This document shows positions 15,701 through 46,987 of a stretch of 64,000 nucleotides of DNA, one piece after another; within the stretch, counting starts at the first letter, position 1; every line of letters starts with the position of its first letter. The DNA comes from Rebecca billardiae RCC1528 (Eukaryota > Protista > Haptophyta): positions 62,001 through 126,000 of the forward strand of contig OZ251229.1 in assembly GCA_965240325.2 (NCBI GenBank). Direction: 5' to 3'. Both the position numbers and the translations under genes were made by a program. Below the pieces are notes generated by a model that did not search any database, was not told where the DNA came from, and was given only the letters and a program-made list of their open reading frames with translations.

Positions 15701-17909
15701 GGCGCGCACGCTCGCCTCGTCGGCGAGCGCGACGCGCGGCGCGCGCCGCCCCGCGCCGGGCGCGGAGAGGCGCACGCGCCCGCCCGCGCCGCCGCCGCCC
15801 TGCGGCGCGCCGCCCAGCCCGCCCGCCGCATGCACCGCCGCCGCGCGGTCGAGCGAGATCGAGTCCCGCGCGCACAGCCAGACCGAGCCGCCCGCGCCGC
15901 CGCCGCCCGCGCCGTCCGCGCCGTACGTGCCCTCGCCGGGCTGGCCGTCGGCGGAGACGGTGGCGCCGGCGAGCTCGATCCGCACCGACGCGTTGAGGTG
16001 CACGACGCCGCCGCCCGCGCCGCCGAGCGGCGCGCCGCCGCCCGAGCCGGGCAGTGCGGGCGCGTCGCCGCAGCCGTACGCGCGCCCGCCCGGCGCGGCG
16101 CGCGCCGTGCCGTTGGGCCCGCCGCCCGCGCCGCCCGCGCCGCCCGCGCCGCCGTGCCCGCCGCCGCCGCCGCCGCGCCGCGCCGCCGCGAGCGCCGCGC
16201 CGCCGCCGCCGCCCGCGGGCGGCGGCGCGCCGCCCGCGCCCGGCCCGCGCTGCGCGCCGCAGCCGAGGTTGGACGCGCTCACCAGCCCGCCGCCCTCGAT
16301 CGAGGCGGCGCACAGCAGCACGGACGAGCCGGAGACGACCGTCGACTCCTCGAGGCCGAGCTGCGTGCGCACCTTGAGCTGCACCGCGTACGCCAGCCCG
16401 CCCGCGTCGACGAGCTCGCAGTCGGGCGTGTAGCGCGCGCCGCCCTCCGCGTCGGGCGCGCAGCCGTCGCGCTCGGCGCGCGTCGCCTCCACCTTGCCGC
16501 GCAGCACGGCGGCGCGCGCGACGAGCGTGATGGTCTCGCCGAGCACGAGGCCGAGCGTCTTGAGCAGCACGTACCCCGCCTCGAGCACCATCGGCCCCGC
16601 GCTCACCAGCCTGCCCCCCAGCCGCAGCGCCCCCGCCGCGCGCACCACGACCTCGTCGGCGAGCAGCTGGCTGGCCTCGTCGAGCGACACGTCCTCGCCG
16701 TCGAGCAGCAGCCGCGCGGCCTGCATGGTCGAGCCCTGCGAGAGGCGGATCTCGCGCGCGGAGACGAGCACGCGCGGGAAGGACGGCGGCGGCCGGCCGT
16801 GCGTGCTCGGCGCGTAGTGCTCGCCGTACAGCAGCCCGCCCACCAGCTGGATCGACGAGGCCGCGCGCACGCACGGCGCGGACGCGGGGCCCGCGCCGAG
16901 CGCCGCGCCCGCGCGCACGACGATCGAGTCGAGCGCGCTCGAGGCGCCGAGCGAGCACGTGCCGCCCGCCTCGGCCCAGCCGTTCGCGCACACCACGCGG
17001 CGGCAGCCGCTGTAGAACACCGTCCCCGCCCCGCCCGCGAAGCAGTTTGGCGACGAGCCGCCGCCGGACACGTCGACGCCCACGGACGCGCCGCGCTCGG
17101 CGGCCGAGGAGGAGGGCGCGCGCTCGCAGCCGGGCAGCTCGACGCGCCCGCCGCCGCCGCCGCCGTACGCGCCGTCGGCGGCGCTCGAGCCGTTCCCGCC
17201 GCCGGCGAGGACCACGCCGCTCCCGTTCAGCGCCGCCGCCGCCGCCGCCGTGTGCCGCGCGCCCTCGCGGCGCGCGGGCGGCGCCGTCTGCTGCAGCACC
17301 ACCGTGCCGCCGCTGCCGCCGCCCACCGGCACGGCGCCCGCCGACGCGCCCGCGGCCTCGAGCACGCCGTCGAGCTGCACGCGCTCGCGCACGCGCACGC
17401 GCACGACCCCGCCCCCGCGCGCCGCGCGCGCGCGCTCGAAGAGCGGCGCGCTCGTCCGGCCGGAGCCAAAGCCTGCGGGCGCGGACGCGGCGCCGTACGG
17501 CAGGCCGCCCGCGTTGTACCCGAGGCAGGAGCCGCCCGTGCCGCCGTGCCCCGCGCCCTGGAGGTGCCGGTCGCCGAGCACGTCGTGCGGCGAGTCCGCC
17601 CGCCCCATGCCGCTCGCCGTCACGCGCGCGCCCGCGGGCACGAGCAGCGCGTCCGCGCTCAGGCTCAGGTTGCCGCCGCGCACGGCCGCGCCGCCCTCGA
17701 GCTCGATCGAGCCGGAGGCGCACGCGAGCGCGAAGGCGCACATCGGCTCGGTGCAGCCGATCTCGACGCCCGCCGCCACGCGCACCCCGCCCTCGAGCGC
17801 CACCTCCGCGCCCTCGCGCGTGAGGCGCGTGCGGTTGACGAGGCAGACGAGCGCCAAAGCGCCCGTCTCGTTGAGCAACGCGTCGCACAGGGCGGGGAGC
17901 GGCGGCGAG

Positions 17910-17957
<48 letters not shown>

Positions 17958-18043
17958 GAGGGCGCGGGCGCGCTCGCGACCGCCGCGACGGCGGCCAGCA
18001 GCACCGCGGCGCAGCCCAGGCGGGCGGGCGCGGCCGCCGGCAT
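12761..18043 (-). CDS. Large Gly-rich, Cys-repeat (GCC2/GCC3, ephrin-receptor-like) multi-pass membrane protein resembling the plant At5g11700/At4g32920 family
   Basis: ATG 18043 with signal peptide, GAGHGG/GGGSGG repeats, tandem CAPCAPG repeats, a TM helix, cytosolic SHVARVYLRGTNEPRAPW and several C-terminal TM helices; about 1760 aa. Confidence 0.78.
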
Positions 18044-18182
18044 CCCCTTGTGTGTCGCAAGTGCGTGCCGTGGACGGGGGACGGAGGGCCTTCTCGGGCT
18101 TCTCCCGTGACGACTGTTCAGCGACCCGCCACCCCCGGCACCGGTCGCAACCACCCCGACCGGCCCCTTGCTCGACGGAACG

Positions 18183-19577
18183 ATGGCGGCCGGCAAGCTG
18201 GAGGTTGCGCCGGGGGAGTTTCCGCCGTGGCTGCAAGAGCGCGACGGCAAGCTGGTCTGCGCGCGGTGCGACGTGTGCGTGGTGGCCACCGGGAAGGGGA
18301 TCAAGCAGCACCTCAAGTCCAAGTCGCACAAGCTCCTGCCCAAGGGAGCGCCGGAGCAGCCGGGCGGGGCGTCGGCGCCGGAGGCAAACGGGCCGCGCGC
18401 GCGGTCGCGCGCGTCGGCGCGCGGCGCGCGTGCGCTGTCGGACGACGACGAGACGCTGCAGGAGCTCGCGCGACTGCTCGGCGCCGGCGAGGCGGAGCTC
18501 GGCGCGGGCGCGCGCGCGCGCCTGCCCGAGTACGCGGCCGCGCTCGACGCGTTCCGCGCGGTCGCCCCGTGTGCGCGCGCGTGCCTGCTGCCGCCCCTCC
18601 TGCGCAACCCGCGGCGCGAGTGCCCGGCGCTCGACCGGCCGTTCGTCACGGCGCAGGTCGGCTCGATCCCCGAGCTGCCGGAGAGCCTCGACGACGCCCT
18701 CCGCGCCTACTTCTCCGGCGTGCGCGGGCGCCACCCGAAGGTGGACGTGTGCGAGCGCGCCGTGGCCGTGCACTCGTGGGCGGACGCGCGCCGCGCGCTC
18801 GAGGCGGCCGACGCGGCGGGCTCGCGCTACTGGTGCACGCTCTTCTGCGCGGAGATGGGGCACCCGCCGTGGTGGCCGCGCGACGCCAAGGGCCCGCGCG
18901 GCGTCGGCGAGGGCGCCACCTCCGTCCCGTTCTTCGACCAGATCATCCTCGGGCGCGGCGCCGTGGGCATCGGCCTGCACGCAGACACGTACGCGCCGCA
19001 CGCCGCGCCCGTCTCCACGTGCCTCACGCTGCTGCGCGGGCGGAAGCGCGTGCTCATGCTGCCGCCGAGCACGGGCGACGGCCGCAGCACCTGCCACTGG
19101 CTCGTCGGCGAGCCGTTCCCGCACGACCCGCCGGCCGCGCTGCTCGCGCGCATCGCGTCCGTGGGCGGGTACTGGTTTGAGCTGCAGGTGGCGCCCGGCG
19201 CGGACCCGCTCGCCTTCTTCACGCCCGCGGGCTGGTTCCACTGGCTCGTCGGCGACACGTGCCACGCGCCGGACTGCGCGCCCGACGGCTGCGCGCCGGG
19301 CTGCAGCGACTGGCACGTCGCGTTTGGCGGCAGCTTCTTCCCGCGCGCCGCGCTCGCGCGCGGGCACGCGCTGCCAGCGCGCCGAGCCGCTGAGCCGGAG
19401 CAGTGCCAGCGCGACCGGTACGCCGACGTTGGAGGCGGGGCCGCGCCCTCGGCCAACGCCTGCGCGGGCTGCGCCGATGCGGGCGATGGGGAGGAGGACG
19501 AGGGGTGCCGCCGGTCGGAGTCGGACGCGGGCGGCAGCGCCGCGTCCGGCGTGACGCAGGCCCTGGTCCTGGAGTGA
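18183..19577 (+). CDS. JmjC/cupin Fe(II)-2OG oxygenase-like protein with N-terminal zinc finger
   Basis: CARC...HLKSKSH (U1/matrin-type C2H2), IGLHADT, LLRGRKRVLMLPP and FTPAGWFHW supply the HxD...H triad. Confidence 0.8.
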   Translation: MAAGKLEVAPGEFPPWLQERDGKLVCARCDVCVVATGKGIKQHLKSKSHKLLPKGAPEQPGGASAPEANGPRARSRASARGARALSDDDETLQELARLLGAGEAELGAGARARLPEYAAALDAFRAVAPCARACLLPPLLRNPRRECPALDRPFVTAQVGSIPELPESLDDALRAYFSGVRGRHPKVDVCERAVAVHSWADARRALEAADAAGSRYWCTLFCAEMGHPPWWPRDAKGPRGVGEGATSVPFFDQIILGRGAVGIGLHADTYAPHAAPVSTCLTLLRGRKRVLMLPPSTGDGRSTCHWLVGEPFPHDPPAALLARIASVGGYWFELQVAPGADPLAFFTPAGWFHWLVGDTCHAPDCAPDGCAPGCSDWHVAFGGSFFPRAALARGHALPARRAAEPEQCQRDRYADVGGGAAPSANACAGCADAGDGEEDEGCRRSESDAGGSAASGVTQALVLE

Positions 19578-19791: not shown

Positions 19792-20895
19792 ATGCTGCTG
19801 GACCGACCCGGGCGGAAAGGAAGCAGCATGGTGCTCGCGCGCATGGTGGCGCGCGTCCCGAGCATCGTCACGCTGCCGCTCTTCGGCCCGCTGGTGTCGC
19901 TGCTCGCGCGCAGCTCGTTCGAGATGGTGCACGGCTTCCTGCGCGTTCTCGGCCTCGCGACGCTGCCCTACTCGCTGCGCCACGGCTGGGTGCGCGACGT
20001 GTTTGCGAGTGCGCCGCACCTGCGCGAGGTGCGCGTGGCGGTCGAGATGGCGCTCGAGTGCGGCGAGAACATGCGGCGGTGCCGCGGCGTGCAGGAGTCG
20101 GGCGTGTCGTGGAAGGGCGACTCGGCCGACTCGATCGACCCGGTCACCGAGACCGACGAGGCGAACGAGGCCCTCGTCACGCGCAAGATCCAGCGGCTCT
20201 TCCCGTCGCACGCCATCATCGGCGAGGAGGCGGCCGCGGCGCACGGGCTGCCCGCGCTCACGGACGCGCCGACGTGGATTGTCGACCCGATCGACGGGAC
20301 GACCAACTTCGTGCACGGCAACCCGCTGTGCGTCGTCTCGATCGGGCTGTGCGTCGGCAAGGTGCCCACGGTGGGCGTGGTGTACGACCCCGCGATGGAC
20401 GAGCTCTACGTGGCCACGCGCGGTCGCGGCGCGTACTGCAACGGGCGCATGATCCGCGTGGACGCGGCGGGGGACACGCTCGAGAAGGCGCTCGTGTTGA
20501 ACGAGCCCGGGTACGAGCGCTCGGCCGCGGGCATCGCCAAGATCTCCGCCACCTCGCGCGCGCTGCTCGAGCGCGGCGTGCAGGCGGTGCGCGTGACGGG
20601 CTCGGCCGTGCTCTCAATCATCTGGGTGGCGTGCGGCCGCGCCAACGCCTACTACGCCGGGCTGCACGAGAAGGACTGCCCCAAGCCGTGGGACTGGTGC
20701 GCGGGGTACGTGATCGCCACCGAGGCGGGCGCCACCTTCGCGCGCGTCGACGGCCGCTCGTACGCCGGCGGCCCGCCGCGCACGTCCGAGGCTGCGTTCG
20801 ACATCTACTCGCAGTCGTGCATCGTCGCGTCCACGCCGCAGCTGTGCGCAGACCTGCATGCGCTCATCAAGGACGCGGTCGCAAACGCGCGCTGA
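19792..20895 (+). CDS. IMPA: Inositol monophosphatase
   Basis: DPVTETD, IIGEE, TWIVDPIDGTTNFVHG and KPWDWCAG motifs. Confidence 0.93.
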   Translation: MLLDRPGRKGSSMVLARMVARVPSIVTLPLFGPLVSLLARSSFEMVHGFLRVLGLATLPYSLRHGWVRDVFASAPHLREVRVAVEMALECGENMRRCRGVQESGVSWKGDSADSIDPVTETDEANEALVTRKIQRLFPSHAIIGEEAAAAHGLPALTDAPTWIVDPIDGTTNFVHGNPLCVVSIGLCVGKVPTVGVVYDPAMDELYVATRGRGAYCNGRMIRVDAAGDTLEKALVLNEPGYERSAAGIAKISATSRALLERGVQAVRVTGSAVLSIIWVACGRANAYYAGLHEKDCPKPWDWCAGYVIATEAGATFARVDGRSYAGGPPRTSEAAFDIYSQSCIVASTPQLCADLHALIKDAVANAR

Positions 20896-26682: not shown

Positions 26683-28401
26683 TAGGGGGGCCAAAGTGGC
26701 ACTGTAGCGTTACTGACGGCCACGAGCGCGGGTCCTAGCGAGTGTTTAGAGCTGATTTCGGGCTGGATCATTTGCCCTCTGGAGGGGTCTGGGCCGGCCA
26801 TGTAAAAAAACCAGGTGCACATACCCTGAATATATAGGGCGTAACGGCTAGCATATTTACTTATTAGAATGAGCCTGAACTTATTGGAAACGGTATGTAA
26901 CGGTCGTCCTATATGTGACATATAGACCATGTCGACCTCACTTTGATAGAGCATCTCAGCGAGATCGATCTGAGTCCCCAGCAGCAGCAGGTCCCAACAT
27001 GCGATATAGGCTGTGTACTGGCAGGCTGTCAAATATGTAGTTTCCTAGAAGCCACCGATCGTTACATACCCACTGTGTATATAGGCGCCATGCTGATGAA
27101 TACAGCCTCGTCTGATCTCGAGCTGCGAGATACGTTTTCAGACTGTGTATACAGCCACGCGTACGGCGTATTGCAGACATAGTAGACCCAAAGCACCGGC
27201 CCCACGTCCTTAGCCCGGGAGTGCTCTCGGTCATAGTCAAGGTTTAAAGTGACTCGAGCCAACCGTCACCGCTCCCTGGCCGAGACCTACGAGGCAGGTC
27301 AAATCTGTCGTCGTCGCAGTGCGGCACAGTGCCGAGCATGCGATTCGGCAGCAAACGTCTGCTCCAGGCGGTGGCTGGCGTGTCTGCACCAAACCAGGCT
27401 GGATGGGATTGGTCCATATAGGTACGCACTACCCTGTTCCGCGCTATTTCTGGGCTTAGGGGCGGATATTCGGCCTACAGAGGCTGATCCGGCGCTGTTC
27501 GGCGCTCCTGGCTGGCTGCGCGGAGCCCACCGGCAAGCGCCGGCGTGTGCAAGGTGTCAAGATTGAGACGGTCTCTGACGCTCCCGCCGGTCTTGGGCGC
27601 ACCAGGGTGCATGAGGGCCCATCTGCATCTGCTTCTGCAGGCACGAGCGTCACAGGGGCGCGCTTGCAGGCACGGTCGAGTGCACGTCGGACCTGTCGAA
27701 TGAGCCAACCGCTGCCTGCGAGCACGTCCGCGACGTCCTGAGAGGCGAATGGGAGGCGCCCAGACGCCATCAGAGGGCACACGTGACCCATACCCAACGT
27801 ACTGACCATCGCAAGTGCCACGGCAGGTGCAAACACGGGCCCTACAAGCGGAACATGACAGTTGCGAGCTCCGCGGAGGTGTTGCGCGCGAGCTCGCGCC
27901 GGTCTGCTGACGGCGATTCCGGCGCAGCAGGGCAGGTTAGGCGAGCTGGGCATCCACATACATACATGGGCACTTGGTGCGAGCATCGATCTCAACTGTG
28001 CGAGTTGATCATGAGCCACACCGTGCGGTAGCGTGACGGGCGCACGCAGCGCGCCAATTCAAGCCGGCCGACGCGCGCCGCGCACGGCGCGAGATGGCCA
28101 AGAAGCGGGTGGTGAGCCGCTGGTGGCGCAAAGGCACGGGTCAGTAGCGCCCACCAGCGTCACGCGCGCGCGCACCCGAGACCATCTCGGCGTCTCAAAG
28201 GTCGCGAGCGCGCGGCGGTCCACTGCCTCCGGCCGCTCGCGCTGGAGCGGAACCGAGCTCTGAGCGTCCGAAGGCGTCGGAGCTCGATTTTCGAGCGGGG
28301 TCCGAGAAAAAGGCTCCGCGCCACCCTAAAAGGCCGAGGGCGGAGCGAAAATGCGACGCGACTTTGCTTTTCATTTTTAAATGGGCGGTTTGGCCCCCCT
28401 A
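26683..28401. mobile_element. Non-autonomous TIR DNA transposon with 13-bp TIR and 7-bp TSD
   Basis: Left end TAGGGGGGCCAAA, right end TTTGGCCCCCCTA; CTCACTA directly flanks both ends (26676-26682 and 28402-28408); lower-GC interior without an intact ORF. Confidence 0.85.
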
Positions 28402-28989
28402 CTCACTAGGCCCGTCACTGTACGGTCACTAGTCGCACTGGCCAGTGACTGGCCGCGCGGATCTGCGGAATAATGCATATCGCGCGCCATATTCACTACT
28501 GTTAATGATCTATATGATAATAGTACTAGCTACACTCTCCATGAAGCCTGCCGTAGAGGTATCATGATGTGATGTGACTTCACTACTGAGTCTACTCACT
28601 AGCCAGTACATATCAGTACTCATTTACATTAGTCCGCGCTGCGCGGACCGGGCTCGCTGCTGCTAAGAATCAGCCAGCAGCCCGCAAACTGCGATCGATG
28701 ATGATATCATCAGCAGCATGGCCATCATGTCGTGACGATGACTAGTTCGTCACGACACGACGAGTCCATCGGTCTATCCTGCCATTTTTGCAGGAATCTG
28801 GAGTTTCCAGGAAGAGTGCGGGAAGCTGTAAGTGGGCGCGCACGCGCGCGCGCTCTGATTGGCCGACGTGACACGCCCGATTCCTCGTCATCCCTAGCTG
28901 TTGAGCGGTGCAGTCGGGCCCACCCGACCACGGCCGCCGTGCTGGCGGGCGGCACCCGACCACGGCCGCTGTGCTTGGCGGGCCACCTG

Positions 28990-29200
28990 ACCGCCCGACC
29001 CGACCCGACTACCCGACTGCCAGTGCCACGCCGCGCCAAGACCCCCCCCCCCCACCCGACCGCCCGACCCGACCCGACCGCCCGACTGCCACGCCGGTCC
29101 GGGGCTAGTCCGGACCAGCCCGGGCCATGGCCGCCGGGCGCCGCGCCAAGACCCCCCCCCGACCCGACCCGACCACCCGACTGCCTCGGACTGCCACGCC
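28990..29200 (-). repeat. About one inverted copy of the 185-bp G-tract satellite unit
   Basis: CCGACCCGACC, GCCAAGA-Cn and GGGGCTAGTCCGG are reverse complements of the 31375-32560 array motifs. Confidence 0.85.
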
Positions 29201-29209
29201 CGGCCGCCC

Positions 29210-30550
29210 GTGCTACCACCGGCCGGGGCAAATCGCGCGCGCGCCGGCGGCGACGAGCCGTGCACCCACGAGATTGTGTTCCTCCGCGACGCCGACGGCC
29301 ACAGGGTGGGCGGTCGGCTGCACGTGCCGAGCGCCTCTCTGCCGCGGCTGGACGCGCTCGTCGCGTCGTCGTACGCGCTGCTTGGCGCGCGCGCGCCCAT
29401 GGTCGTCGAGACGTTCGGCGCGCGCGCGCGGTTCGGCGTCGACGTGGATCTGCGCTTCTCCCGCATGCCCTCGTACGACGCCCTCGCCGCGCTGCTCGTC
29501 GACCTCTACGACGCGGCAGACGCTGCGTTCCACGGCGTGCCCCGTCCCGCGCGCGGCCACGCCGTGCACGTCTCGGCGCGCGCGGCGACGCCCTCGCGCC
29601 CCGGGGTCGCCGCGGACGACGCCGGCCTGTTCCGCGCGGGCCTGCACGCCACCTGGGGCGACAGTGCGGTCCTGAGCTCCTCGGAGGCGCAGCGCGTCGC
29701 GCGGGAGCTGGACGTGCGGCTGCAGGCGAGCCCTGTGCGCGCCCTCTTTGCCAAGGCCGAGGTCGATGGGTCGATCTACCGCTCCGGCTTGCGCTTGCCG
29801 TTCACGGCCAAGGCGGACGGCGGCCCGCCCTACCTGCCCGCCGCCGTCGTCGCTGCCGACGGCTCGGGCGTCGTGCGCTGCGCCTGGCTCTCGGCGCTGC
29901 CGGCCGGGCACGCCCTGCGGCAGCGCTGCGAGCCGGCGCGTTGGCTCGCGCTGACGCGGCTGCGCACCGAGCGCTTCGAGTTCGCCGCGAGCGCCGCGGC
30001 GGGCAGCGCCCGCCCCGGCGCGCCGGCGGCGGCGCGGCGTGCGCCGCCGTGCCCGCCGCCCCACCCGCAGGCGCCGCTCTGCGCGCGCGCCGCGGGGCGC
30101 GGCGCGCTCGTCGCGTGGCTCAACGCGCAGCTCGACGCGCACGCGGCCGGCGCAGGCGACGCCGGGCACTGGCCGCGCGTCCAGCGGGTGTACGCAGGGA
30201 GCACGCCGCACGGCCGCATCGCGACGTGCTCGACCACGAGCAGGTGGTGCGAGCGCAAGCGCGGCGAGCATGCGAGCAGGACCGTCTACTACGTCGCCAA
30301 CGCCGACGGCATGGACCTGTGCTGCGGTGATCCCGTGTGCGTCGCCGCTGCTGGCGGCCGGCGCGGCGCGCGCGCCGTTCGCCTCCGGGGGCTACCGTAC
30401 CGCCATCTGCCCAGCGGCGCGTGCGCGCGCGGGTGCTGCGGCCCCGCGCAGCAGCCCGCCCGTGAGGCCGGCTGCGGCACCGCCGCGGCGCTGCCCGCCC
30501 CTGGCCAGACGTTTGCGGCGCTCTGCTCCGACGCCTTCGGCGGAACTTAG
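29210..30550 (+). CDS. Archaeo-eukaryotic primase (AEP) / PrimPol of the NCLDV-herpesvirus clade with C-terminal UL52-like Zn ribbon; start uncertain
   Basis: TH...GGRLHVP N-terminus, motif I RFGVDVD, motif II GLH, motif III DGSIYRSGLRLPFTAK, and SRWC...H.SRTVYY...CCGDPVC; intronless. First in-frame ATG is 29399. Confidence 0.8.
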   Translation: MLPPAGANRARAGGDEPCTHEIVFLRDADGHRVGGRLHVPSASLPRLDALVASSYALLGARAPMVVETFGARARFGVDVDLRFSRMPSYDALAALLVDLYDAADAAFHGVPRPARGHAVHVSARAATPSRPGVAADDAGLFRAGLHATWGDSAVLSSSEAQRVARELDVRLQASPVRALFAKAEVDGSIYRSGLRLPFTAKADGGPPYLPAAVVAADGSGVVRCAWLSALPAGHALRQRCEPARWLALTRLRTERFEFAASAAAGSARPGAPAAARRAPPCPPPHPQAPLCARAAGRGALVAWLNAQLDAHAAGAGDAGHWPRVQRVYAGSTPHGRIATCSTTSRWCERKRGEHASRTVYYVANADGMDLCCGDPVCVAAAGGRRGARAVRLRGLPYRHLPSGACARGCCGPAQQPAREAGCGTAAALPAPGQTFAALCSDAFGGT

Positions 30551-30807
30551 CTGCTGCAGCTAGCTGCTCGGCCGCCGCCACTTGTTAATGTTAGTCTGAG
30601 TTTAGAGTTAGGACGACGACGCGGCAATCAATAACTGTAACAGTCGCGTATCGGTCAGAATGCATCCTCAGCACACAGTGGTCAGTGCGGACGGGCAGAC
30701 GACGTCAGCATTATTATAATATATTCAGAATTATACATATCGGAGTTGGAAGCTGCGCGGCTGAGCGGTCGAACGCCTACGTGCCCACGCTGATGCGCGC
30801 CGGCGCC

Positions 30808-31340
30808 CCCACGCCCCCATTTGTCCACCCGGACAAGGCGCGCGCACGGCGCGGCGGGCAGTCACGGTTGGCTCAGCCGGGCGGGCCGCTCGTGCGCGGC
30901 GCATCGACCCGTCTCCTCGCGCTCGGCGCCGCCCGCAGCGTGCGCGTCCGGCCACGCGCGCCGCGGTCGCGCGGCGAGCGCGCTGGCGACCGAGGGCGTC
31001 GGCCGCGCGACGGCGCGCGCGCGCGCGCCACGCCCCCATTTGTCCACCCGGCGCGGCGCGCGCGCGCGCGCGGGGCCCGCGCGCGCGGCCAAGGTCGTCA
31101 GCCGCGCGACGGCGCGCGCGCGCGCGCCACGCCCCCATTTGTCCACCCGGCGCGGCGCGCGCGCTGCGCGGCGCGGCGACCCGTCCGTCCTCGCGCTGCG
31201 CCGCCCGCGGCGTGCGCACCCGGCCACGCGCGCCGCGGTCGCGCGGCGAGCGCGCTGGCGACCGAGGTCGTCGGCCGCGCGACGGCGCGCGCGCGCGCGC
31301 CACGCCCCCATGTGTCCACCCGGCGCGGCGCGCGCGCGTT
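30808..31340 (+). repeat. Irregular direct repeats (ACGCCCCCATTTGTCCACCCGG core), four copies
   Basis: Core at about 30811, 31030, 31129 and 31302, with shared CCGCGCGACGGCGCGCGCG flanks. Confidence 0.85.
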
Positions 31341-31374
31341 GTGCCCCGGCCGGGCGGCCGGGGCGTGGCCCCGA

Positions 31375-32560
31375 GTCGGGCAGTCGGGTCGGGTCGGGCG
31401 GTCGGGTGGGGGGGGGGGGTCTTGGCGCGGCGCGGCGCGGCGGCCATGGCCCGGACTGGTCCGGACTAGCCCCGGACTGGCGTGGCAGCCCCGGACTGGC
31501 ATGGCAGTCGGGCAGTCGGGTCGGGTCGGGCGGTCGGGTGGGGGGGGGGGGTCTTGGCGCGGCGTGGCACTGGCAGTCGGGCGGTCGGGTCGGGTCGGGC
31601 GGTCCGGGGTGGGGGGCCGGGGGGGTCTTGGCGCGGCGGCGGCGGCGGCGGCCATGGCCCGGACTGGCCCGGACTAGCCCCGGACTGGCGTGGCAGTCGG
31701 GCGGTCGGGTCGGGTCGGGCGGTCGGGTGGGGGGGGGGGGTCTTGGCGCGGCGTGGCACTGGCAGTCGGGCGGTCGGGTCGGGTCGGGCGGTCGGGTGGG
31801 GGGCGGGGGGTCTTGGCGCGGCGGCGGCGCGGCGGCCATGGCCCGGACTGGCCCGGACTAGCCCCGGACTGGCGTGGCAGTCGGGCGGTCGGGTCGGGTC
31901 GGGCGGTCGGGTGGGGGGGGGGGGGTCTTGGCGCGGCGTGGCACTGGCAGTCGGGCGGTCGGGTCGGGTCGGGCGGTCGGGTGGGGGGGGGGGGGGGTCT
32001 TGGCGCGGCGGCGGCGCGGCGGCCATGGCCCGGACTGGCCCGGACTAGCCCCGGACTGGCGTGGCAGTCGGGCGGTCGGGTCGGGTCGGGCGGTCGGGTG
32101 GGGGGGGGGGGGTCTTGGCGCGGCGTGGCACTGGCAGTCGGGCGGTCGGGTCGGGTCGGGCGGTCGGGTGGGGGGGGGGGGTCTTGGCGCGGCGGCGGCG
32201 CGGCGGCCATGGCCCGGACTGGCCCGGACTAGCCCCGGACTGGCGTGGCAGTCGGGCGGTCGGGTCGGGTCGGGCGGTCGGGTGGGGGGGGGGGGGTCTT
32301 GGCGCGGCGTGGCACTGGCAGTCGGGCGGTCGGGTCGGGTCGGGCGGTCGGGTGGGGGGGGGGTCTTGGCGCGGCGGCGGCGCGGCGGCCATGGCCCGGA
32401 CTGGCCCGGACTAGCCCCGGACTGGCGTGGCAGTCGGGCGGTCGGGTCGGGTCGGGCGGTCGGGTGGGGGGGGGGGGTCTTGGCGCGGCGTGGCACTGGC
32501 AGTCGGGCGGTCGGGTCGGGTCGGGCGGTCGGGTGGGGGGGGGGGTCTTGGCGCGGCGGC
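31375..32560 (+). repeat. Higher-order tandem array, ~185-bp unit, about 6.4 copies, strongly G-skewed
   Basis: GGCCATGGCCCGGACTGG recurs at about 31442, 31650, 31835, 32021, 32205 and 32387. Each unit has two GGCAGTCGGGCGGTCGGGTCGGGTCGGGCGGTCGGGT-Gn-TCTTGGCGCGGCG subunits with variable G-tract length. Confidence 0.95.
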
Positions 32561-32654
32561 GGCGGGCGGCCGCCGCCAGCGGCGGCAGCTGGCGGCGCCG
32601 CGGCGCGGCGGCGCGCGCGCGGACCGTCGCTGACTATACAGAGGAATCAAACAG

Positions 32655-34592
32655 TAGCCTGGTCCAAACGCACTGGAGCACTTTCGGGGATTTTATCGCC
32701 AAATGAATGCGGGCCCCTAGGCACGCGCTCACACCCGGAAACAGCGTAACAAATGGGCCCAGCCCGGGCGGAGCAAAAGTTTCGGCCTAAAAATCGCATC
32801 CGCGGCCCGTCGTGAGCGTGCGCGCGCGCGCCGCGGACAACTACGGACACATAGAGAATCGTCAGTCTGAAGGTGGGTAAGTACTTAACCGAAATGAGCC
32901 CAAACGCACGAACTTACTTATTGGCGTACGTCGAGGCGAGCATGAACCTTGGTACAGGCCATTAGGATGGGCTGTGGTCTGTGCGCAAGTGGCCGTACTC
33001 AACTACTGCAAGATCGACAATATTACCCATTTGTACCCGCATAATATGGGCAGTGTACCCGCATAAATATGCGGTCTGGACCTGTATAATTACAATGCCA
33101 CTATGTCGTTACATATTCGCCATAGGTGGGTAGCTGTCCCAGGCTGCACGATTAGTGCGGCGCGCGGGGTGCATTGGTCGGAAGAGGCTCCGCCTGGCCT
33201 TCCGCGCACTCCTGCAGACAAGAAGAGGGCCGGACTCCCACCCGGCCAGGCGTGCGGCAGTCGGTCAGGTGCTGGACCTGGTCTGGAGACCATCTCCTGC
33301 GTGGCGACTGGCCGATATGCGGCACAACGCGCGCCGCCGTGAGCCACACGGCAGGTTCGCAACGGATCCGGTTCGCGTGTCCATGGCGGCGTGCATCGAG
33401 TCATTCAAGCTGTCAAGTCGCGTGCCACGCCCGCCCTTTCACTTGGGGCATCAGTACTGCCTACAACGACGACATGTGCGTCCTTAGATGAGGCATAATC
33501 GCGATTCTAGCTGCCCGTCCAAGGGTCAGATCGCACGTCTTTGCTCGCCCGACAGCCTCAACGGCGGACTGATGTGATCCGCGGGTGACGATGCGACCGC
33601 TTTGAGTGCGCCTACGGCCACCACCGGGGTGGGGATCGTTCATGGGCACCCTCCGCGTGCCATGACATGCTCTGGCCGTGCGTGGTGACATGGCCCACCG
33701 CGCGTAAACGGGAAAGACACCCGAGCACGTGCTTCCGAGCCACCCGAATGGCACAATGTGCCACCCATGGACACCAAACAGGCGCCAGAGCGCAAGCCTT
33801 GCGTGCTGGAGTAGCTGCACGGCACCAAGGAAGACGTATGAGCGCTCTCAACCATCTTCAAGCGACGACTCCGTCGACTCTGCCTCGCAGACCGCGGTAC
33901 GATCCTCGACCTTGTGCTCGCAGCAAAGGCCATGACGGTAAAGCAGCACCCATGCGATGGGAGTCAGCCGGCAGCCACCACACTGCGACTGTACACACCC
34001 AGCCCCGCAAGGCGAGCCATCCTGCTCGCCACCAGCCCGTCATACAGCTCCACGAGGAGCACAAATCGACAGCCGCCGCTCAGGACGACCCATGCGCGAA
34101 CGTGACGGGACTGGCCGGATGAAGCGTTGGCGATGCGCAGCGCGCCCAACGCTGGTGGTGGCATCGAATACATGCTAGGGGTAGGCGGTGGCCGACACGA
34201 GCCGTCGCGTGGCCCGCATATTACCCGAGGTGGCCCGTCTCGAACGCGCGGCGCAACCCAGCAGGTGAGCGTTCGACGCACGCCGTCGGGCAAGAAGTCG
34301 ACCTGGCGACGGACCGCGGGCGGCGGAAGCAACGCAGACATGTCGCTCAAGGTGTGCACGCACACCACCGGGGCACCCGAACGATGTGTCCAGCACTACA
34401 CCTGACATGAGGCGGCGCAGTCGTCCAGTCGAGGCTCTCGAGCCCCTTCCGACCTTCGTCGCGGCGAGCCGTCGGACGGCCGGTGGCGATTTTTGACGAG
34501 CGCGACGAGCAACGAGAAAAATCGGGAGAAATGAGGCGCCCAAAATCCGAAAAAGGCTTTTTCACTGGCGAAAATCGAGATGGACCAGGCTA
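32655..34592. mobile_element. Nested non-autonomous TIR transposon with 12-bp TIR and 7-bp TSD
   Basis: Left TAGCCTGGTCCA, right TGGACCAGGCTA; CAAACAG at 32648-32654 and 34593-34599. Confidence 0.88.
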
Positions 34593-34877
34593 CAAACAGT
34601 GTCGTGCACACTATGGGCAGCCGGTGACTTCCGGGACATGTCCCTACAGAGGGGTAGAAAGCCGCTCAGCCTGGGTATCTGGGGGGTCGCCCCTATGGGC
34701 CCCCTAGGGGCAGGGGGGGAGGGTGCCGTGACACTACAGATTCCTGCAAAAATCACAGGGTACACCAGTCCATCACGGCATATCTAGCAGCGCGCAGACG
34801 AGTGGCAGCGCAGCGCTCCGCGGAGGCGCTGCGCGGGGCTGGCGGCGAGGTCACGCAGCGCCGCCCCACGCATGCGC

Positions 34878-36419
34878 TCAGCCGAGCTGCTGCGCCACCG
34901 CGCCCCCCGCCGCCTCGCCCTCCGCGGCCGGCGCCGCTGCCGCCCCCTGCGCCGCTGCCGCCCCCTGCGCCTCGGCCTCGGCCTCGGCCGTGAGCGCGTG
35001 GACGGCGCGCGCGAGGATCTCCGCGGCGCGGTCGACCTCGGCGGCGGTGGTGTGCCGGCCGACGGAGAGGCGCAGCGTGCCGCGCGCGTACTCCGCGGGC
35101 ACCTTGAGCTCGCCGAGCACGCCCGACACCTTGACCGCCTCCGCCGAGTGGCACGCCGCGCCCGCGGACGCGGCCAGCTCGTGCGCCACGCGCGCGAGCA
35201 CCGCGGCGCCGCGCACGCCGCGCACGCCCACGCTCAGCACGTTGGGCAGAGACGGCCACGCGCCGAGCGCGTCGTCGGGGCCGAAGGCGAGCGGCGAGTT
35301 GACGCGCAGCCGCGCCTTGCCCAGCCGCGCCTCGAGCGCCTCGAGCAGCCGGTCGCGCATCGCCGCGGCGTGCTGCGCGATCGCCCCGCCCTGCTCGTTC
35401 CACACGCGCGCCGCCTCGCCCAGCCCCGCGAGCAGAGGCACGCTCTCGGTGCCCGCGCGCCGCCCGCGCTCCTGCCCGCCGCCGTGGAGCATGTTGGGCA
35501 GCGCGAGGCCCTTGCGCACGTACAGCGCGGCCACGCCCTTCGGCGCGCCGAACTTGTGCCCGACGAGCGTGAGCATGTCCACCTCGAGCTCGGGCGCGGA
35601 GACGGCCACCTTGCCCACGGACTGCGCAGCGTCCGTGTGCACGAGCGCGCGCGGGCACGCGGCGCGCACGGCGCGCGCGATCGCGCCGATGGGCTGGACG
35701 GTGCCCACCTCGTTGTTGGCGTGCATGATCGTGACCAGCGCCGTCTGCGGGCGCAGCGCGCGCGCCACCTCCTCCGGGCTCACGCGCCCCCACCCGTCCA
35801 CGCCGACGCGCGTGACGGTCGCGCGGCCCGCCGCCTCGAGCGCGTCGCAGCACGCGAGGATGGCCGGGTGCTCGATGGTCGAGGTGACGACGTGCGGCGT
35901 CTCGCGCGGGCCGAGCCGCGCGCGCGCGAGCTCGACCGCGCCCACGATCGCCCAGTTGTCCGACTCCGAGCCGCACGACGTGAACACCACCTCCTCCGCG
36001 CCGCACTCGAGCAGCTGCGCGACGGCGGCGCGCGCGCGCTCGACCGCCGCCTTGGTCTGCACGCCGTACGCGTGCGGCGAGGAGGGGTTGCCCCACTGCA
36101 CGCTGAAGTACGGGGCCATCGCGTCGGCCACGTCGGGGTAGATCGGGCACGTCGCCGCGTAGTCCATGTACACGCAGTCCTCCGCGCCCGGCGTCGGCGG
36201 CAGCGGCGAGCCGACCGCGCGCCGAGCGACCGCGGGCGCCGGCACTGGCGTGGGCGCCGCGCCCGCGGCGCTCGCGCGGATGGCGCCGCCGCCTCGCGAG
36301 AGCGGGCGCAGGCCCAGCCGCGCGCGCGTGGGCACGGCCGCGCCGAGCAGCGCGCGCACGGGCGAGAGCGCGTACGCGGCGGCGCTGAGCATGAGGCGGA
36401 GCACGCGCGAGGCCGACAT
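34878..36419 (-). CDS. Group I PLP-dependent cysteine desulfurase / selenocysteine lyase-like (NifS-type) enzyme with organellar presequence
   Basis: YMDYAATCP, WGNPSS, FTSCGSESDN, IEHPAI, MHANNEVG, HTDAAQSVGK, VGHKFGAPKG, GGGQERGRRAGTE and SAGAACHS. Confidence 0.92.
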   Translation of the reverse strand: MSASRVLRLMLSAAAYALSPVRALLGAAVPTRARLGLRPLSRGGGAIRASAAGAAPTPVPAPAVARRAVGSPLPPTPGAEDCVYMDYAATCPIYPDVADAMAPYFSVQWGNPSSPHAYGVQTKAAVERARAAVAQLLECGAEEVVFTSCGSESDNWAIVGAVELARARLGPRETPHVVTSTIEHPAILACCDALEAAGRATVTRVGVDGWGRVSPEEVARALRPQTALVTIMHANNEVGTVQPIGAIARAVRAACPRALVHTDAAQSVGKVAVSAPELEVDMLTLVGHKFGAPKGVAALYVRKGLALPNMLHGGGQERGRRAGTESVPLLAGLGEAARVWNEQGGAIAQHAAAMRDRLLEALEARLGKARLRVNSPLAFGPDDALGAWPSLPNVLSVGVRGVRGAAVLARVAHELAASAGAACHSAEAVKVSGVLGELKVPAEYARGTLRLSVGRHTTAAEVDRAAEILARAVHALTAEAEAEAQGAAAAQGAAAAPAAEGEAAGGAVAQQLG

Positions 36420-36682
36420 GCGCACGAGTAGGTACTGGGCCGCGCCGCGGGCGTGCGTCCTTCCGGACGGAGCCGTCCGGGACGAATAAGCGATCTTTCA
36501 TATATTCTTTTGTCATCGTTTTGTGGTCATCATGATAGAAGAATCCGCTGGTCGTCATTCATCCATCACGGGGCAGCCACATTGTCGACATCTCTCTTTC
36601 TCTCGCGCGCGCGCGCGGCACTCAGGGTGGCTTCACCCTTGCCAGTGGCCGCCGCGCGCCGCGCGGCATCCCGCGGCCAAGT

Positions 36683-38687: not shown

Positions 38688-39989
38688 ATGACAGTCAGCA
38701 TGGCGGACTCATGCACGATCGCCGCGAATGTCCCCGCAGCGGCGACCTTCTCCATCTTCTCCGACACGGCCTGTGGGCGTGGCGTGCGCGCCGGCGTTGC
38801 TCTGCGGCCTGGTGAGCACGTGGCCACAGCGCACGCCTTCGCCATCGGCGTGGCGCCGACGCACTGCGCGCGCTGTCTCGCGCGCTTGCGCAGTGGCGGC
38901 CCCGCGTGCGCGGGGTGCGGCATGTCGTACTGCAGCGAGCAATGCGCCGCGCACGACGCGCGCGGGCACTCGGCCACCGAGTGCGCCCTCCTGGCACGGC
39001 TGGCGCGCGCGTCCGAGTGGCACACGCCGCTGATGCGGCTGCTCGTGCGCGTGCTCGCGCGCATGGCGCAGCACGCGCCCACCACGGCCGACGGGCGCGC
39101 CACCGCGGAGACGCGCACCGCGGACGCCATCTGCGCGCGCGTCCGCTCGGCGCCGTCGAGCGCCGATCTCCGCGCGGACGACGTCGCGTTGCTCGACGCG
39201 TGCCGCCAGCAGATGCCCACCTCCCAGTACGGCCGCGTGATGGCCACCTCGCACTTCCTGCAGAGGCTGGCGAGGCGCGCGCTGCCGGACGCGCCCGCCG
39301 CGCTGCCCGCGGACGTCCCCGGCGTGGTCTGCCGCGTGCTGCACAACGGCTTCGGCCTCCGCGCCGCCGACGCCGACGGCTCGGAGCCCGTCGGCTGCGC
39401 GCTCTTCCCGACCGCGAGCTTCTTCAACCACGCGTGCGCGCCGAGCTGCTGCGTGCTGCGCGAGCCGGGCGCGCCGGCCGTGCTGCGCGTGTGCGCGGCG
39501 CGCGCGGTGCGCGAGGGCGAGGAGCTGAGCATCAGCTACATCGACCTGCGGCTGCCGCGCGCGGAGCGCCGGGCGCTCCTGCGCGAGAGCTACAGCTTCG
39601 AGTGCGCGTGCCATCGGTGCCGCCACGACCTGCCGTGCGCGCTGCAGCTCTGCCCCGCGCGCAGCTGCGCGGGGCGCGGCGTCCTCGTGCCCGCGGCAGA
39701 GGCAGAGGGCGCGCCGCACGCGGACGGCGGCGGCAGCGCCGGCCGGGGCGTTGGCGGCGGCTGCGCATGCGTGGCCGGTGCGGCGCGCCCGCAGTCGCCG
39801 TCGCAGGCGCAGCCGGAGCAGCCACATCAGGCGCCCGACGCCGCCACGCAGCCCGAGGTGACAGCGGAGCAGGCTACGCTGCGGTGCAGCTCCTGCGGCG
39901 TCCTCCGCAGCCGTGCGCGCGCGCACACGGCGGCACAACTGAAACGGTGCGCGCAGCCACGGCCACAGCAGCCACAGCAGGCACGTTGA
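38688..39989 (+). CDS. SET and MYND domain lysine methyltransferase (SMYD family)
   Basis: GRGVRA, MYND CARC..CAGC...YCSEQC...H..EC, FFNHACAP, GEELSISY and post-SET FECACHRC. Confidence 0.92.
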   Translation: MTVSMADSCTIAANVPAAATFSIFSDTACGRGVRAGVALRPGEHVATAHAFAIGVAPTHCARCLARLRSGGPACAGCGMSYCSEQCAAHDARGHSATECALLARLARASEWHTPLMRLLVRVLARMAQHAPTTADGRATAETRTADAICARVRSAPSSADLRADDVALLDACRQQMPTSQYGRVMATSHFLQRLARRALPDAPAALPADVPGVVCRVLHNGFGLRAADADGSEPVGCALFPTASFFNHACAPSCCVLREPGAPAVLRVCAARAVREGEELSISYIDLRLPRAERRALLRESYSFECACHRCRHDLPCALQLCPARSCAGRGVLVPAAEAEGAPHADGGGSAGRGVGGGCACVAGAARPQSPSQAQPEQPHQAPDAATQPEVTAEQATLRCSSCGVLRSRARAHTAAQLKRCAQPRPQQPQQAR

Positions 39990-41753: not shown

Positions 41754-43728
41754 TGATTAAACTTTTCTGAGGATAGCGCACCAGCAATTTCCCTTGACCG
41801 CCATCCGGGCCGAAGTGGCGCAAAATGGCGGTTGCCCCGTTTGGGCGCCCTTCCGCGCCTTCGAGCGGCTCGTGCGCGTCGGGAAGTGCGCCGAAGCGTA
41901 TCCGGAGCATGCTCCATCGACGCGTCGCACTGCCGGGCCCTCGCATGCGAGCCCATGCCGACGTCTGAGTGCGCCTCGCTGCGCACGGTACAGCTTGACG
42001 GTACACGGCACGATTCGGCCGCGAGCAGCCTCGTGCGCGCGACCGAGCCAGAGGTGGTCGTCGAGAGTAGCACGAGCGGCGGCACACAAGCGGGCCTGGT
42101 CGTTGCCGAATATCTGACGCACCAATCGACCTCGCCCAGCGCCATCTGCTCGTTTGCGCACGTGTCGGAAAGAATGCGCAGCTGCCTGCAAACGCCGAGC
42201 GCGCAGATGAGGCGTGGGCGAGCGAAGGGGCGGCGAGGGCCGGCGCGTGCGCGCGCGTAAATTCGAGCCTCCCCATACGCATCGAAACACACCGCGCTCG
42301 CTCGTCGAGCTGCGCACGGGTATCGGTGCGCGCGCGCCAACGCGGCGCGCCGTGAACGCGCCCGGCGAATGCACACCTGCTCGCGCGCGCACGCGCACGT
42401 GATGGACCGAGGAGGCCGCGCGAGCATGCGCGATGTGTCTGGATGGAGCGTGTAGGAGGTGTAGGCTGCGCTCCGCACGCGCTCCGCCACCGTGCACCGC
42501 GCTGCCCCTCGTCCACGCGATCGCCGCCGAGCCCAGATTCAAACGCGCGCGAGCGCTCGAGCGCACCTCCGGGCAGCAGTCGCAGCTATCGTGACGAAGG
42601 CGTGGCGAGAGGCAGATGTGCATGGCAAGTATCGTCATTGTGGTGCCCATCACGCGCACACTCTCGCGCATGCTCGCTGCACCACCTCGTCGCGCCCACG
42701 TGCAGCGCGCGGGGCGCGCTTCGTGCCCGGAGCAGCTGCGGAGCGGCTGCCGCGCGCAGTGCGCGCGGCGAGTAGGGCTCAGCCAATGGTCCGAGGGCGA
42801 GCCGGCCGAGCGTCGTGCGTGACGCACACGGACCTGGTGCAACGCCGCGTACCACTCGCAGCCACCATCGCGCCCGTACCAGCGAGCTGTGGCCGCCGCC
42901 GACACCCCAAAGCAGCCCAGCCGTCAGCGCGCGACAGCCGACGAGCGTCAGCGCGCGACGCGCGCGTGCACCACCGTGATGAGCACGGATGAGCGCGCGC
43001 GCCCGTGTCGTAGCTCAGGTGGGGTCCCCCGATCGCACGCACCACCGCGCTGCCACGCCTTCGACCATCTTGTGTCACCACGCGGGCACACGCCGGGCAG
43101 GCGGCGGGGCAGCCCGCTCGGCAAACGGTCAGCGCGCAGCGAGGATGGAGTCCGGCGAGGGGCGACCGGAGTGTCCGGCGCGACGGAGGTGGTCCACGCC
43201 GTGGTCGCCGACGCGTTCCTCACCACCTCCGAGGCCGTGGTGGCCGCCCGGGAGAAGGAATGCTCCCAGTCGCACCCTTTGCAGTGCTCCTTTGCGCGTG
43301 CACGCAACGGCGAGGAGCGGAAGCGTTAGAGGGCACTTTTTGTGCAGTTCAGGCGTTCTTTCCCCAAAATGTAGAATGCGCGGAGAAGTGCCCTCTAACG
43401 ATTTTCGTGTGCAGCCGTGCCGCGCGCGCGAGGAAGGCCACATGCGGCTCCTTGCACATCTGCTGCAGATCGGCTCGTGCTCGGCGAGCGCGGCGAGGAG
43501 GAAGGTGCGCGCTCGCGAGCTGGCGCACCTGGGAGTCCTCGCGGCCTCCGAGCAGAAAGAGCGCGTCGAGCGCAACGCCGCAGGTCGCACGGTCGCGATC
43601 TCGCGAGAGCGGTGGTGCGAGGGCGGGCCTCGCCATCGCGCGTTTCTGCGTCCAAACGCGGCCTCCGTAAAATCCGGATGGCGGTCAAGGGATTTTGCTG
43701 GTGCGCTATCCTCAGAAAAGTTTACACA
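41754..43728. mobile_element. Non-autonomous TIR transposon (~55-bp TIRs) inserted in a (TA)n tract
   Basis: TAAACTTTTCTGAGGATAGCGCACCAGCAA..TCCCTTGACCGCCATCCGG on the left and its reverse complement at 43674-43724; TG...CA ends; TATATA on both sides. Confidence 0.9.
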
Positions 43729-45189: not shown

Positions 45190-45443
45190 CGCCGGCCGCC
45201 GTGCGTGCGCAGCCCCGCGCAGCCTGCCCCGCTACGACACGCTGATTCCGAAACGTGTGTCGTGAGGGGCTGGGCGTGAGTTCTCTAAGCGGACCCGCCG
45301 TTACTCGGGCGCCATCGCGTCGGTTTCACGCCGCCATCGTCGGCCTGGCCACTTCCTGCAGGGCGGGCGGCAGCGCACCTCCTCGCCTCCTCGACGGGCG
45401 CGCGCGCGCGCGGCTCTCGGCGCGGCGGCGCGGCCGTGCGCCC

Positions 45444-46987
45444 ATGGTGAAGCGCGTGGGCCAGTATGAGATCGGCCGCACCCTCGGCGAGGGCACCTTC
45501 GGCAAGGTGAAGGCCGCGACCAACGTGGACACGGGCGAGCGCGTGGCGATCAAGATCCTGGACAAGGAGAAGATCCACCAGCAGAGCATGGGCGCGCAGA
45601 TCAAGAAGGAGATCAACGTGATGAAGATGGTGAAGCACCGGCACGTGGTCAACCTCAACGAGGTGCTCGCCTCGAAGACCAAGATCTTCATCGTCCTCGA
45701 GCTCGTCACGGGCGGCGAGCTGTTTGACAAGATTGTCGCCGCCGGCCGGTTCGACGAGCCGACCGCGCGCAAGTACTTCCGGCAGCTGATGTCGGGGGTG
45801 GACTACTGCCACCGGCAGCAGGTGTGCCACCGCGACCTCAAGCCCGAGAACCTGCTGCTCGACGAGACGAGCTCGCTCAAGATCTCCGACTTCGGCCTGT
45901 CCGCGCTGTACGGCACCGACCAGGACTCGACGCTGCTCAAGACGACGTGCGGCACGCCCAACTACGTCGCGCCCGAGGTGCTCGCGGACAACGGGTACTC
46001 GGGGTTCGCGGCGGACATCTGGTCGTGCGGCGTGATCCTGTACGTGCTGCTCGCCGGCTTCCTCCCCTTCGACGAGCCCGCCATGTCCGTCCTCTTCCGC
46101 AAGATCATGAAGGGCGACTTCACGTACCCGTCTTGGTTCACGCGGCAGGCCAAGGAGCTGCTGCAGACCATCCTCGTCACCGACCCGAAGAAGCGCGCGT
46201 CGATCGAGGAGATCAAGGCGACGGCGTGGTACCGCGAGGGCGGCTTCACCGAGGACGAGCTGCGCGCCGAGGACGGCACGGGCCTCGACCCGTCGCCCGA
46301 CGAGATGGACATCGGCGTCGCGGACGACGCGGCGGACGAGGGCGCGGAGGGCGACGCGGACGACGTCGACCTGAACCCGCAGAAGTGAGCCAGCCCGCAG
46401 CGGGCGCGGGCAGACGCGCGCGCCGCCGCCACGCACGCCGCGCTGAGGCGCCGCGCGCCGCGCCGCCGCGCCGCCCGCGCGCAGAATCAACGCGTTCGAG
46501 CTGGTGACGCTGCTGGGCGGCATCGACCTGACGCCGATGCTGGACAAGGACGAGAACGCGCGCGTCAAGCTCACGCGCTTCGCCACCAAGGTGCGCGCAG
46601 GAGGAGGAGGGGGGGCGGGGGCGGGCGGGGCGGGCGGCGGGCGCTGACGCCCGCGTGCGCGGTGCGCGCCCCGCGCAGCTCTCGGCGTCCAAGGCGGTGG
46701 AGGAGCTGGTGGCGGCGCTGGACGCGCTCGGCATGAAGCACGAGAAGGTGAACCAGTTCAAGCTGACAGTCACGTTTGACACGCCCGCGGGCGAGGGCAC
46801 GATGACGGCGCAGGCGTTCATCCTCGCGCCCGGGCTGCACCTGCTCGACTTCAGGCGCGGACAGTCAGACTACCTCACCTACTACAAGAAGTACTGCGTG
46901 ATCAAGGAGAAGCTCGCGCACATCGTCGACCCGATCGAGACCTCGTACGCGCAGGGCGAGGCGGAGCGGCCGGCGGCGCCGACATAG
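45444..46987 (+). CDS. CIPK: CBL-interacting (CIPK/SnRK3-like) Ser/Thr kinase; introns 46385-46484 and 46591-46678
   Basis: GEGTFGKV, HRDLKPEN, DFG and TTCGTPNYVAPE, followed by the NAF motif INAFELVTLLGGIDL and TRF. Confidence 0.92.

Follow-up and report, generated by a model that had tools for sequence, protein, structure and literature searches.

We analysed a 64-kb window (the whole stretch of 64,000 nucleotides) of the haptophyte Rebecca billardiae RCC1528, which contains an element of 5996 bp at positions 28771–34766. The element is bounded by terminal inverted repeats (TIRs), is flanked by a target site duplication (TSD) and carries a single gene, encoding a primase-polymerase of the archaeo-eukaryotic type (AEP) that belongs to the clade of the nucleocytoplasmic large DNA viruses (NCLDV) and herpesviruses.

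Ends and interior of the element

The features of the element and of its immediate borders are as follows.

28763–28770, no strand: left copy of the TSD, AGTCCATC, the same 8-mer standing outside both TIRs
28771–28800, + strand: left TIR, 30 nt, with an exact 17-nt core at 28784–28800; 26 of its 30 positions match the right TIR
28801–28982, no strand: left subterminal non-coding region, holding a tandem repeat of 32 nt in 1.9 copies (28921–28983)
28983–29195, − strand: C-rich block, about 1.15 inverted units of a 184-nt G-rich repeat (inverted repeats I1–I25)
29210–30550, + strand: AEP primase-polymerase frame, 446 codons as listed, with codon periodicity, 0 internal stops and 0 frameshifts
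29258–29854, + strand: AEP catalytic core, residues 17–215, with motif I DxD (D78, D80), motif II H146 and motif III D186
30227–30364, + strand: UL52-type zinc finger C347-x6-H354-x17-C372-x4-C377, which aligns with the Herpes_UL52 stretch of the relatives
30551–30892, no strand: spacer after the stop codon, AT-rich at about 30580–30760, not significantly similar to the DNA 3' of the gene in the relatives
30893–31340, + strand: direct repeats of 99/173 nt (D4, D11) with a 24-nt motif
31356–32571, + strand: G-rich tandem array, period 184 nt, 6.0 copies, 97% matching within 31471–32571
32655–34592, no strand: nested non-autonomous TIR element, 1938 bp, with perfect TIRs of 12–13 nt and a 7-bp duplication
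34600–34736, no strand: right subterminal non-coding region
34737–34766, − strand: right TIR, 30 nt, pairing with the left TIR
34767–34774, no strand: right copy of the TSD, AGTCCATC, about 100 bp past the stop codon of a class V aminotransferase gene

The 17-nt core occurs at exactly two sites in the window, in inverted orientation, at 28784–28800 (+) and 34737–34753 (−). No further site was found in the window at up to three mismatches, the chance expectation being 0. The pairing of 28771–28800 with 34737–34766 covers 30 nt and is imperfect (26/30), and the similarity detected by blastn reaches about 37 nt at 84%. Thus the preliminary description of this locus, made from the sequence alone, was right about imperfect TIRs of about 30 bp with a perfect 17-bp core. 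Immediately outside both TIRs there is a perfect 8-bp direct repeat, AGTCCATC. Random pairs of positions in the window share an 8-mer flank at a frequency of 2.5e-4; since the junction was picked after inspection, a fairer chance figure for AGTCCATC is about 1e-3 to 1e-2. Given the TIRs and the perfect TSD, the whole 5996-bp unit was inserted in one transposition event, and hence it is a TIR-bounded insertion that moved as a single unit. Its limits, initially placed at 28777–34760, are set by the TIRs and the TSD at 28771–34766. In the left flank (28690–28760), just ahead of the duplicated 8-mer, there are short palindromes, which may be remnants of yet another element.

It had also been noted that TA stands on both outer sides. 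The dinucleotide is indeed present, but it is neither outside the TIR nor the duplicated target, as the inverted complementarity carries on outward through the TA pair and the TSD is the 8-bp AGTCCATC. A Tc1/mariner-type origin, with duplication of TA, is therefore ruled out, since TA is internal to the TIR and the TSD has 8 bp. An 8-bp TSD is compatible with enzymes of the hAT, Merlin, MULE, P and Zisupton types. The ends of the element begin with GG, unlike the typical termini of hAT elements.

An alternative is that the region is not one element at all but a domesticated host AEP gene that has, by coincidence, an independent and unrelated copy of a short repeat on either side. The codon composition of the gene, which is host-like, agrees with this, as do the small TIR elements clustered in the region. 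However, AGTCCATC stands as a perfect 8-bp repeat exactly outside both inverted ends, the 17-nt core is confined to these two sites in 64 kb, no orthologue comes from the annotated proteome of the haptophyte Diacronema lutheri, and the D. lutheri locus offers no synteny for comparison. As the duplication is perfect, we consider this alternative very improbable.

The interior is dominated by repeats. The frame is bracketed by inverted blocks, whose arms (28983–29195 versus the array 31356–32571) are up to 157 nt long and 96% complementary, as expected from the earlier mention of inverted G-tract blocks on either side of the gene. All 15 occurrences of the G-tract motif in the window fall within the element. 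The 24-nt motif has four occurrences, three in the direct repeats (30893–31340) and a solitary one upstream, at 30809. Beyond the TIR, the left and right subterminal regions show no similarity to each other by blastn. The length of the G-run varies among the copies of the 184-nt repeat (31374–32571), being about 10–15 G; runs of this kind are prone to length errors in assembly, and the G-rich strand may form four-stranded structures.

These repeats have to be weighed when one considers another origin for the interior, namely that the inner cassette (about 28983–32571), made up of the AEP frame and the spacer between the inverted G/C-tract repeats, is a relic of a small virus-like replicon, or of an endogenised fragment of a giant virus, which landed in an ordinary element similar to miniature inverted-repeat transposable elements or was enclosed by one later, so that the outer TIRs are unconnected with the origin of the cassette. 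Such an origin is suggested by the inverted arms of tandem sub-repeats (157 nt, 96%), which start about 180 nt inside the outer TIRs and are expanded on one side, and by the AT-rich spacer following the stop codon, the DNA around it being otherwise 70–85% GC. Moreover, the kin of the AEP are conserved syntenic NCLDV genes located near DUF5832 genes in contigs with GC content of 54% and 69%. On the other hand, neither a TSD nor a sharp boundary is definable around the cassette, the element and the window are devoid of further viral genes such as those for a capsid, a packaging ATPase or a helicase, and the codon composition is fully host-like. Further, subterminal repeat arrays are common in ordinary class II transposons as well. 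We regard such a relic as unlikely.

The nested element at 32655–34592, already reported as a 1.9-kb insertion in the preliminary description, has its own TIRs and its own duplication, CAAACAG (32648–32654 and 34593–34599). It shows no coding periodicity, its open reading frames (ORFs) have no Pfam domains, and it is unrelated to the 6-kb element that hosts it. It came in later than the latter. Without this insertion the 6-kb element would have a length of about 4.05 kb, a figure obtained by arithmetic only.

The AEP gene and its relatives

Codon periodicity within the element is confined to 29.1–30.3 kb on the + strand, in the frame of 29210–30550. As this is the only such stretch and it carries the AEP motifs, the AEP is the sole gene of the element, in agreement with what had been proposed. 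The GC content at the three codon positions (0.78/0.64/0.92) is like that of host genes; at third positions it is 0.92–0.94 in the AEP frame versus 0.92–0.98 in the host genes. Two further frames over the same stretch, in DNA of 78% GC, are open for 352–532 codons. Hence openness by itself is little evidence, since at this GC content other frames are long and open too. All tblastn matches to the relatives lie in one frame, that is, there are no frameshifts. The single defect of the frame is that no in-frame ATG precedes the conserved N-terminal core; in four full-length relatives, Met is situated 11–81 residues upstream of this core. The lack of ATG may be a true defect, an assembly matter or a consequence of an unrecognised splice. 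Thus the ORF, initially described as intact, is so with respect to stop codons and frameshifts, but not with respect to the start codon.

All residues that are invariant in the family, both catalytic (D78, D80, H146, D186) and zinc-binding (C347, H354, C372, C377), are retained. The four catalytic residues fall in invariant columns of an alignment that includes NCLDV members, and the zinc-finger stretch is homologous to the match of the Pfam family Herpes_UL52 (PF03121) in two relatives, the protein P0007 and the protein encoded in contig L037. The window ORF itself matches no Pfam family at E ≤ 1, and neither a PDB sequence search nor a word-indexed protein search with it yielded a match. Since the ORF alone is below the Pfam threshold, its clade membership was established via the relatives, the profile match and the fold. 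The profile–profile comparison (hhalign) of the GC-rich clade with the NCLDV clade gave 99.1%, E 1.5e-18 over 278 columns, running from the N-terminal strands through the zinc finger. In PDB, the sequence profile found only a poxvirus D5-type primase domain, with E 0.05.

The AlphaFold2 model has a mean pLDDT of 67, with 70–88 in the core. Its best Foldseek matches in PDB are UL52 of herpes simplex virus 1 (HSV-1) and the N-terminal Prim/Pol domain of AsfvPrimPol (E 3e-7 to 1e-5, TMt 0.5–0.6). Among viral models, the best matches are the AEPs of medusavirus, Feldmannia virus (a phaeovirus), pandoravirus, pithoviruses and others, with E 3e-12 to 1e-8. Cellular PrimPol was not seen among the matches from 1.84 billion representative proteins, among the PDB sequence matches or among the top 50 PDB fold matches. 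It should be borne in mind that cellular PrimPol (human PRIMPOL/CCDC111) has the same AEP core and a UL52-like zinc finger, and belongs to the same NCLDV/herpesvirus clade of AEPs. By motifs, profile comparison and fold, the window protein is an AEP of the NCLDV/herpesvirus clade, and its nearest identifiable kin are stand-alone AEPs of giant viruses of the algal type. The assignment to this clade had originally been made from the motifs, and the profile and structure comparisons that had been recommended as a check led to the same answer.

An exhaustive HMMER search of the 1.84 billion representative proteins produced eight matches only, so that this AEP clade, with six small clusters in the collection, is nearly unsampled. 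Six of the eight have 33–47% identity to the window protein and come from short GC-rich contigs (metagenomes or read-set assemblies). Several are fragments of 114–281 residues, compared to 358–509 in the full-length relatives. The two most distant matches, P0007 and P0008, adjoin NCLDV major capsid genes. The Pfam domains found in the relatives are AEP_C962R (in P0004, P0007 and P0008), Herpes_UL52 (in P0007) and PPL4 (in P0007 and P0008). No AEP orthologue was retrieved from the annotated Diacronema lutheri proteome, which is present in the same collection.

The 88-kb giant-virus contig L037 (IMGVR_UViG_3300044540_000305), with 69% GC, contains an AEP gene at 2935–4707 that encodes both domains and is located beside DUF5832. 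The proximity of the AEP gene to DUF5832 is a conserved synteny, observed in NCLDV contigs with 54% GC (L004, L020) and in L037. The latter demonstrates that very GC-rich viruses with a gene for an AEP with the UL52 finger exist, and viruses of this kind could be the donor type.

The only feature that the window has in common with the contigs of the relatives is the ORF. No significant non-coding similarity was detected between them, either by blastn or by local alignment controlled by shuffling (z ≤ 2.6). A motif seemingly common to the 99/173-nt repeats and the flanks of the AEP in contig L002 was dropped: the pattern had been written after both sequences were viewed, and for sequences of such lengths chance alone would give about three 13/14 matches.

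The closest relative deserves a separate comment. Contigs L002, L003 and L022 are one locus recovered from three read sets (96–99.9% identity), and this locus has only the C-terminal two-thirds of an AEP; in L002 the similarity begins only at motif III. The start of L002 resembles what we presume to be a sequencing adapter. The AEP of L002 is bracketed (300–460 and 1256–1314) by direct and inverted copies of a GC-run motif of about 50 nt.

The state of the gene and the distribution of its relatives bear on a further possibility: GC-rich haptophytes may have a hitherto undescribed family of small elements with TIRs in which the AEP is the core replication gene. It would either prime or copy the element in the course of copy-out transposition or serve a satellite that replicates upon infection of the cell by a giant virus, and integration would be borrowed in trans, from another element or from a virus. 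Several observations are consistent with this. The core and the zinc finger are complete and retain every invariant residue, the frame is free of stops and frameshifts and has strong codon periodicity, no other coding region is present in the element, and long inverted repeats lie on both sides of the ORF. The family is rare and patchy (six small clusters per 1.84 billion proteins, none from D. lutheri), as is typical of mobile or viral genes, and several relatives are truncated. However, the conserved core is not preceded by an in-frame ATG, and in none of the relatives did we find a second copy, a shared TIR or a shared flank. Moreover, TIRs combined with a TSD of fixed length are the signature of a DDE-type transposase; they point to such an enzyme, yet no transposase is encoded in the element, and the AEP alone offers no route to integration. 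The literature searched provided no precedent. A core role of the AEP is therefore assigned a low probability; it is retained, together with the relic cassette considered above, because nothing is missing from the catalytic apparatus and the passenger reading does not explain the inverted blocks.

Mobilisation of the element and known systems

No transposase or integrase domain was found by Pfam in the ORFs of the element, of the nested element or elsewhere in the window, including its other low-GC, non-coding islands, in line with the initial impression that the element has no recognisable gene of this kind. Hence the element is non-autonomous at best. In addition to it, the window contains three TIR elements with TSDs and no coding capacity, at 26683–28401, 32655–34592 and 41754–43728, and since these three are non-autonomous as well, transposases acting in trans are plausible.

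Within the 64-kb window neither the TIRs nor the inner repeats nor the AEP have a second copy; in particular, tblastn revealed no second AEP copy or fragment. A search of metagenome contigs with a 23-nt TIR pattern, in collections that do not include the host genome, gave one match, in contig L008, and no partner. It was rejected as a chance match, being AT-rich and having neither an inverted partner nor any other similarity. The 17-mer yielded nine single matches in IMG/VR, all in unrelated contigs and without an inverted partner, and these were also taken as chance. The contigs of the relatives and the D. lutheri locus contain no TIR-like sequence.

The reading that we prefer, with modest confidence, is that of a class II (cut-and-paste) transposon that is not autonomous, is mobilised in trans and carries an AEP derived from a virus as its passenger. 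The transposase, encoded elsewhere, would bind to the TIRs and cut the target with a stagger of 8 bp. The AEP, of viral ancestry, would have been picked up by the element or enclosed in it, and would then have resided in GC-rich DNA long enough to acquire the codon composition of the host. It would not be needed for transposition. We lean toward a passenger because the gene has no start codon, because the ORF alone is common to the relatives, and because transposases acting in trans are plausible. Nothing observed here supports a role of the AEP in the propagation of the element, which is seen in a single copy. Judging from the sequence, the AEP may still be translated, as the invariant catalytic residues and zinc ligands are kept although the canonical start is absent.

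Some facts do not sit well with a captured passenger. With a single copy known, no family and no donor locus are in view. The captured genes of Pack-type elements are usually fragments or chimeras, whereas here the whole core and the zinc finger are present, with no stop or frameshift and with clear periodicity, which would also fit selection for the benefit of the element. The inverted blocks bracketing the ORF (96%) are not explained by simple capture. Finally, the relatives from short contigs (33–47%), some of them fragments, would equally fit a decaying family of AEP-bearing elements.

Of the known systems, the Pack-type elements of plants (Pack-MULE, Pack-CACTA) are similar to a transposon with a passenger AEP in that they have TIRs and a TSD, lack a transposase of their own, depend on one acting in trans and contain an acquired gene or gene fragment. 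The missing start codon fits a captured piece. The differences are that the cargo here is a viral-type enzyme with a complete core and zinc finger, rather than a fragment of a host gene, and that the host is a haptophyte. The likeness is drawn from one copy, with an 8-bp TSD and GG ends, and with no donor locus seen.

The stand-alone AEPs of giant viruses (AEP_C962R, PF23162, with Herpes_UL52, PF03121; proteins P0007, P0008 and P0013–P0023, and that of L037) have the same domain order, motifs and fold as the window protein, but their identity to it is 23–32% only. They adjoin NCLDV capsid, NUDIX and DUF5832 genes, whereas the window copy is alone in a transposon, on a cellular chromosome, and uses host codons.

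Polintons (Mavericks) and casposons are transposons that also carry an enzyme of DNA synthesis. They have family B polymerases and their own integrase (rve or Cas1, respectively), and the element considered here has neither. The contrast between its AEP and the family B polymerases of these transposons, drawn in the preliminary description, is borne out by the motifs, the profile and the fold.

Polinton-like viruses and virophages are TIR-bounded and integrated in protist genomes, and some of them have a primase of the AEP type (PMC4642659, PMC10120064). They are 14–40 kb long and encode capsid proteins, a packaging ATPase and an integrase or tyrosine recombinase of their own, and in them the AEP is fused to a superfamily 3 helicase (PMC4642659, PMC10120064). 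As no capsid genes, packaging ATPase or integrase are found in the element or in the window, a Polinton, a Polinton-like virus and a virophage are all ruled out. Teratorn of medaka is a piggyBac-like TIR transposon fused to a herpesvirus genome, 180 kb in size and with its own transposase (PMC5601938). It resembles the present element in being a TIR transposon whose genes for viral replication come from the same broad clade of AEPs. However, Teratorn contains a whole viral genome and resides in a vertebrate, whereas here we have one viral-type gene, 6 kb and no transposase.

Small transposons are known to have colonised a giant-virus genome (PMC4495683), and by analogy, transposons within such a genome provide a possible route of exchange. 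A full-text literature search revealed no small element with TIRs and a TSD in which an AEP is the only gene, which is not a proof of novelty. A small TIR transposon without a transposase and with a giant-virus-type AEP as its sole gene is an unusual combination. Gene traffic between giant viruses, transposons and algae is known mainly at two scales, that of whole viruses, endogenised or Polinton-like, and that of small transposons in a giant virus. The element would be a compact vehicle for spreading a viral replication gene within the host genome and perhaps back into viruses. Should further copies exist, each with the AEP, they would form the first family of eukaryotic TIR transposons built around an AEP and not around a family B polymerase. 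If the element reflects a one-off capture, it is a modest but clean haptophyte example of a viral gene taken up in the Pack-type manner.

Neighbouring genes and other elements of the window

The window is nuclear DNA, with a GC content of 60–88% per 2-kb window, long exons and GC at third codon positions of 0.92–1.00. The neighbours of the element are ordinary cellular genes. The named genes and the two remaining TIR elements are the following.

19792–20895: inositol monophosphatase
26683–28401: TIR element, 1719 bp, non-coding, with perfect 13-nt ends starting from TAGGGG and a 7-bp duplication, CTCACTA
34878–36425, − strand: class V aminotransferase, cysteine desulfurase-like
38688–39989: SET-domain protein
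41754–43728: TIR element, about 1975 bp, with ends of about 21 nt and a TA-rich target
45255–46388: protein kinase
47954–57970: ATG2

The insertion site of the AEP element is intergenic, just downstream of the class V aminotransferase gene. The best named match of the aminotransferase is a Diacronema lutheri protein with 74% identity; the GC content of the respective D. lutheri locus is similar, 0.706, and the gene order there is not common to the window. By this one marker gene, the host is probably a haptophyte resembling the pavlovophytes. An exact look-up of a protein from a neighbouring host gene gave no match. No tRNA or Rfam family was found in the window.

Between the TIR element at 26683–28401 and the left end of the AEP element there are about 370 bp; the ORFs of this TIR element have no Pfam domain. 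In the element at 41754–43728 the length of the duplication is ambiguous, as it falls in a (TA)n context; this element has no transposase domain, and its interior is not similar to those of the other TIR elements. The window also contains very long open frames (1962 and 3338 codons) with extreme codon bias, for example, at 10442–12466, 12761–18649 and 47954–57970, and two of these match no Pfam family at all.

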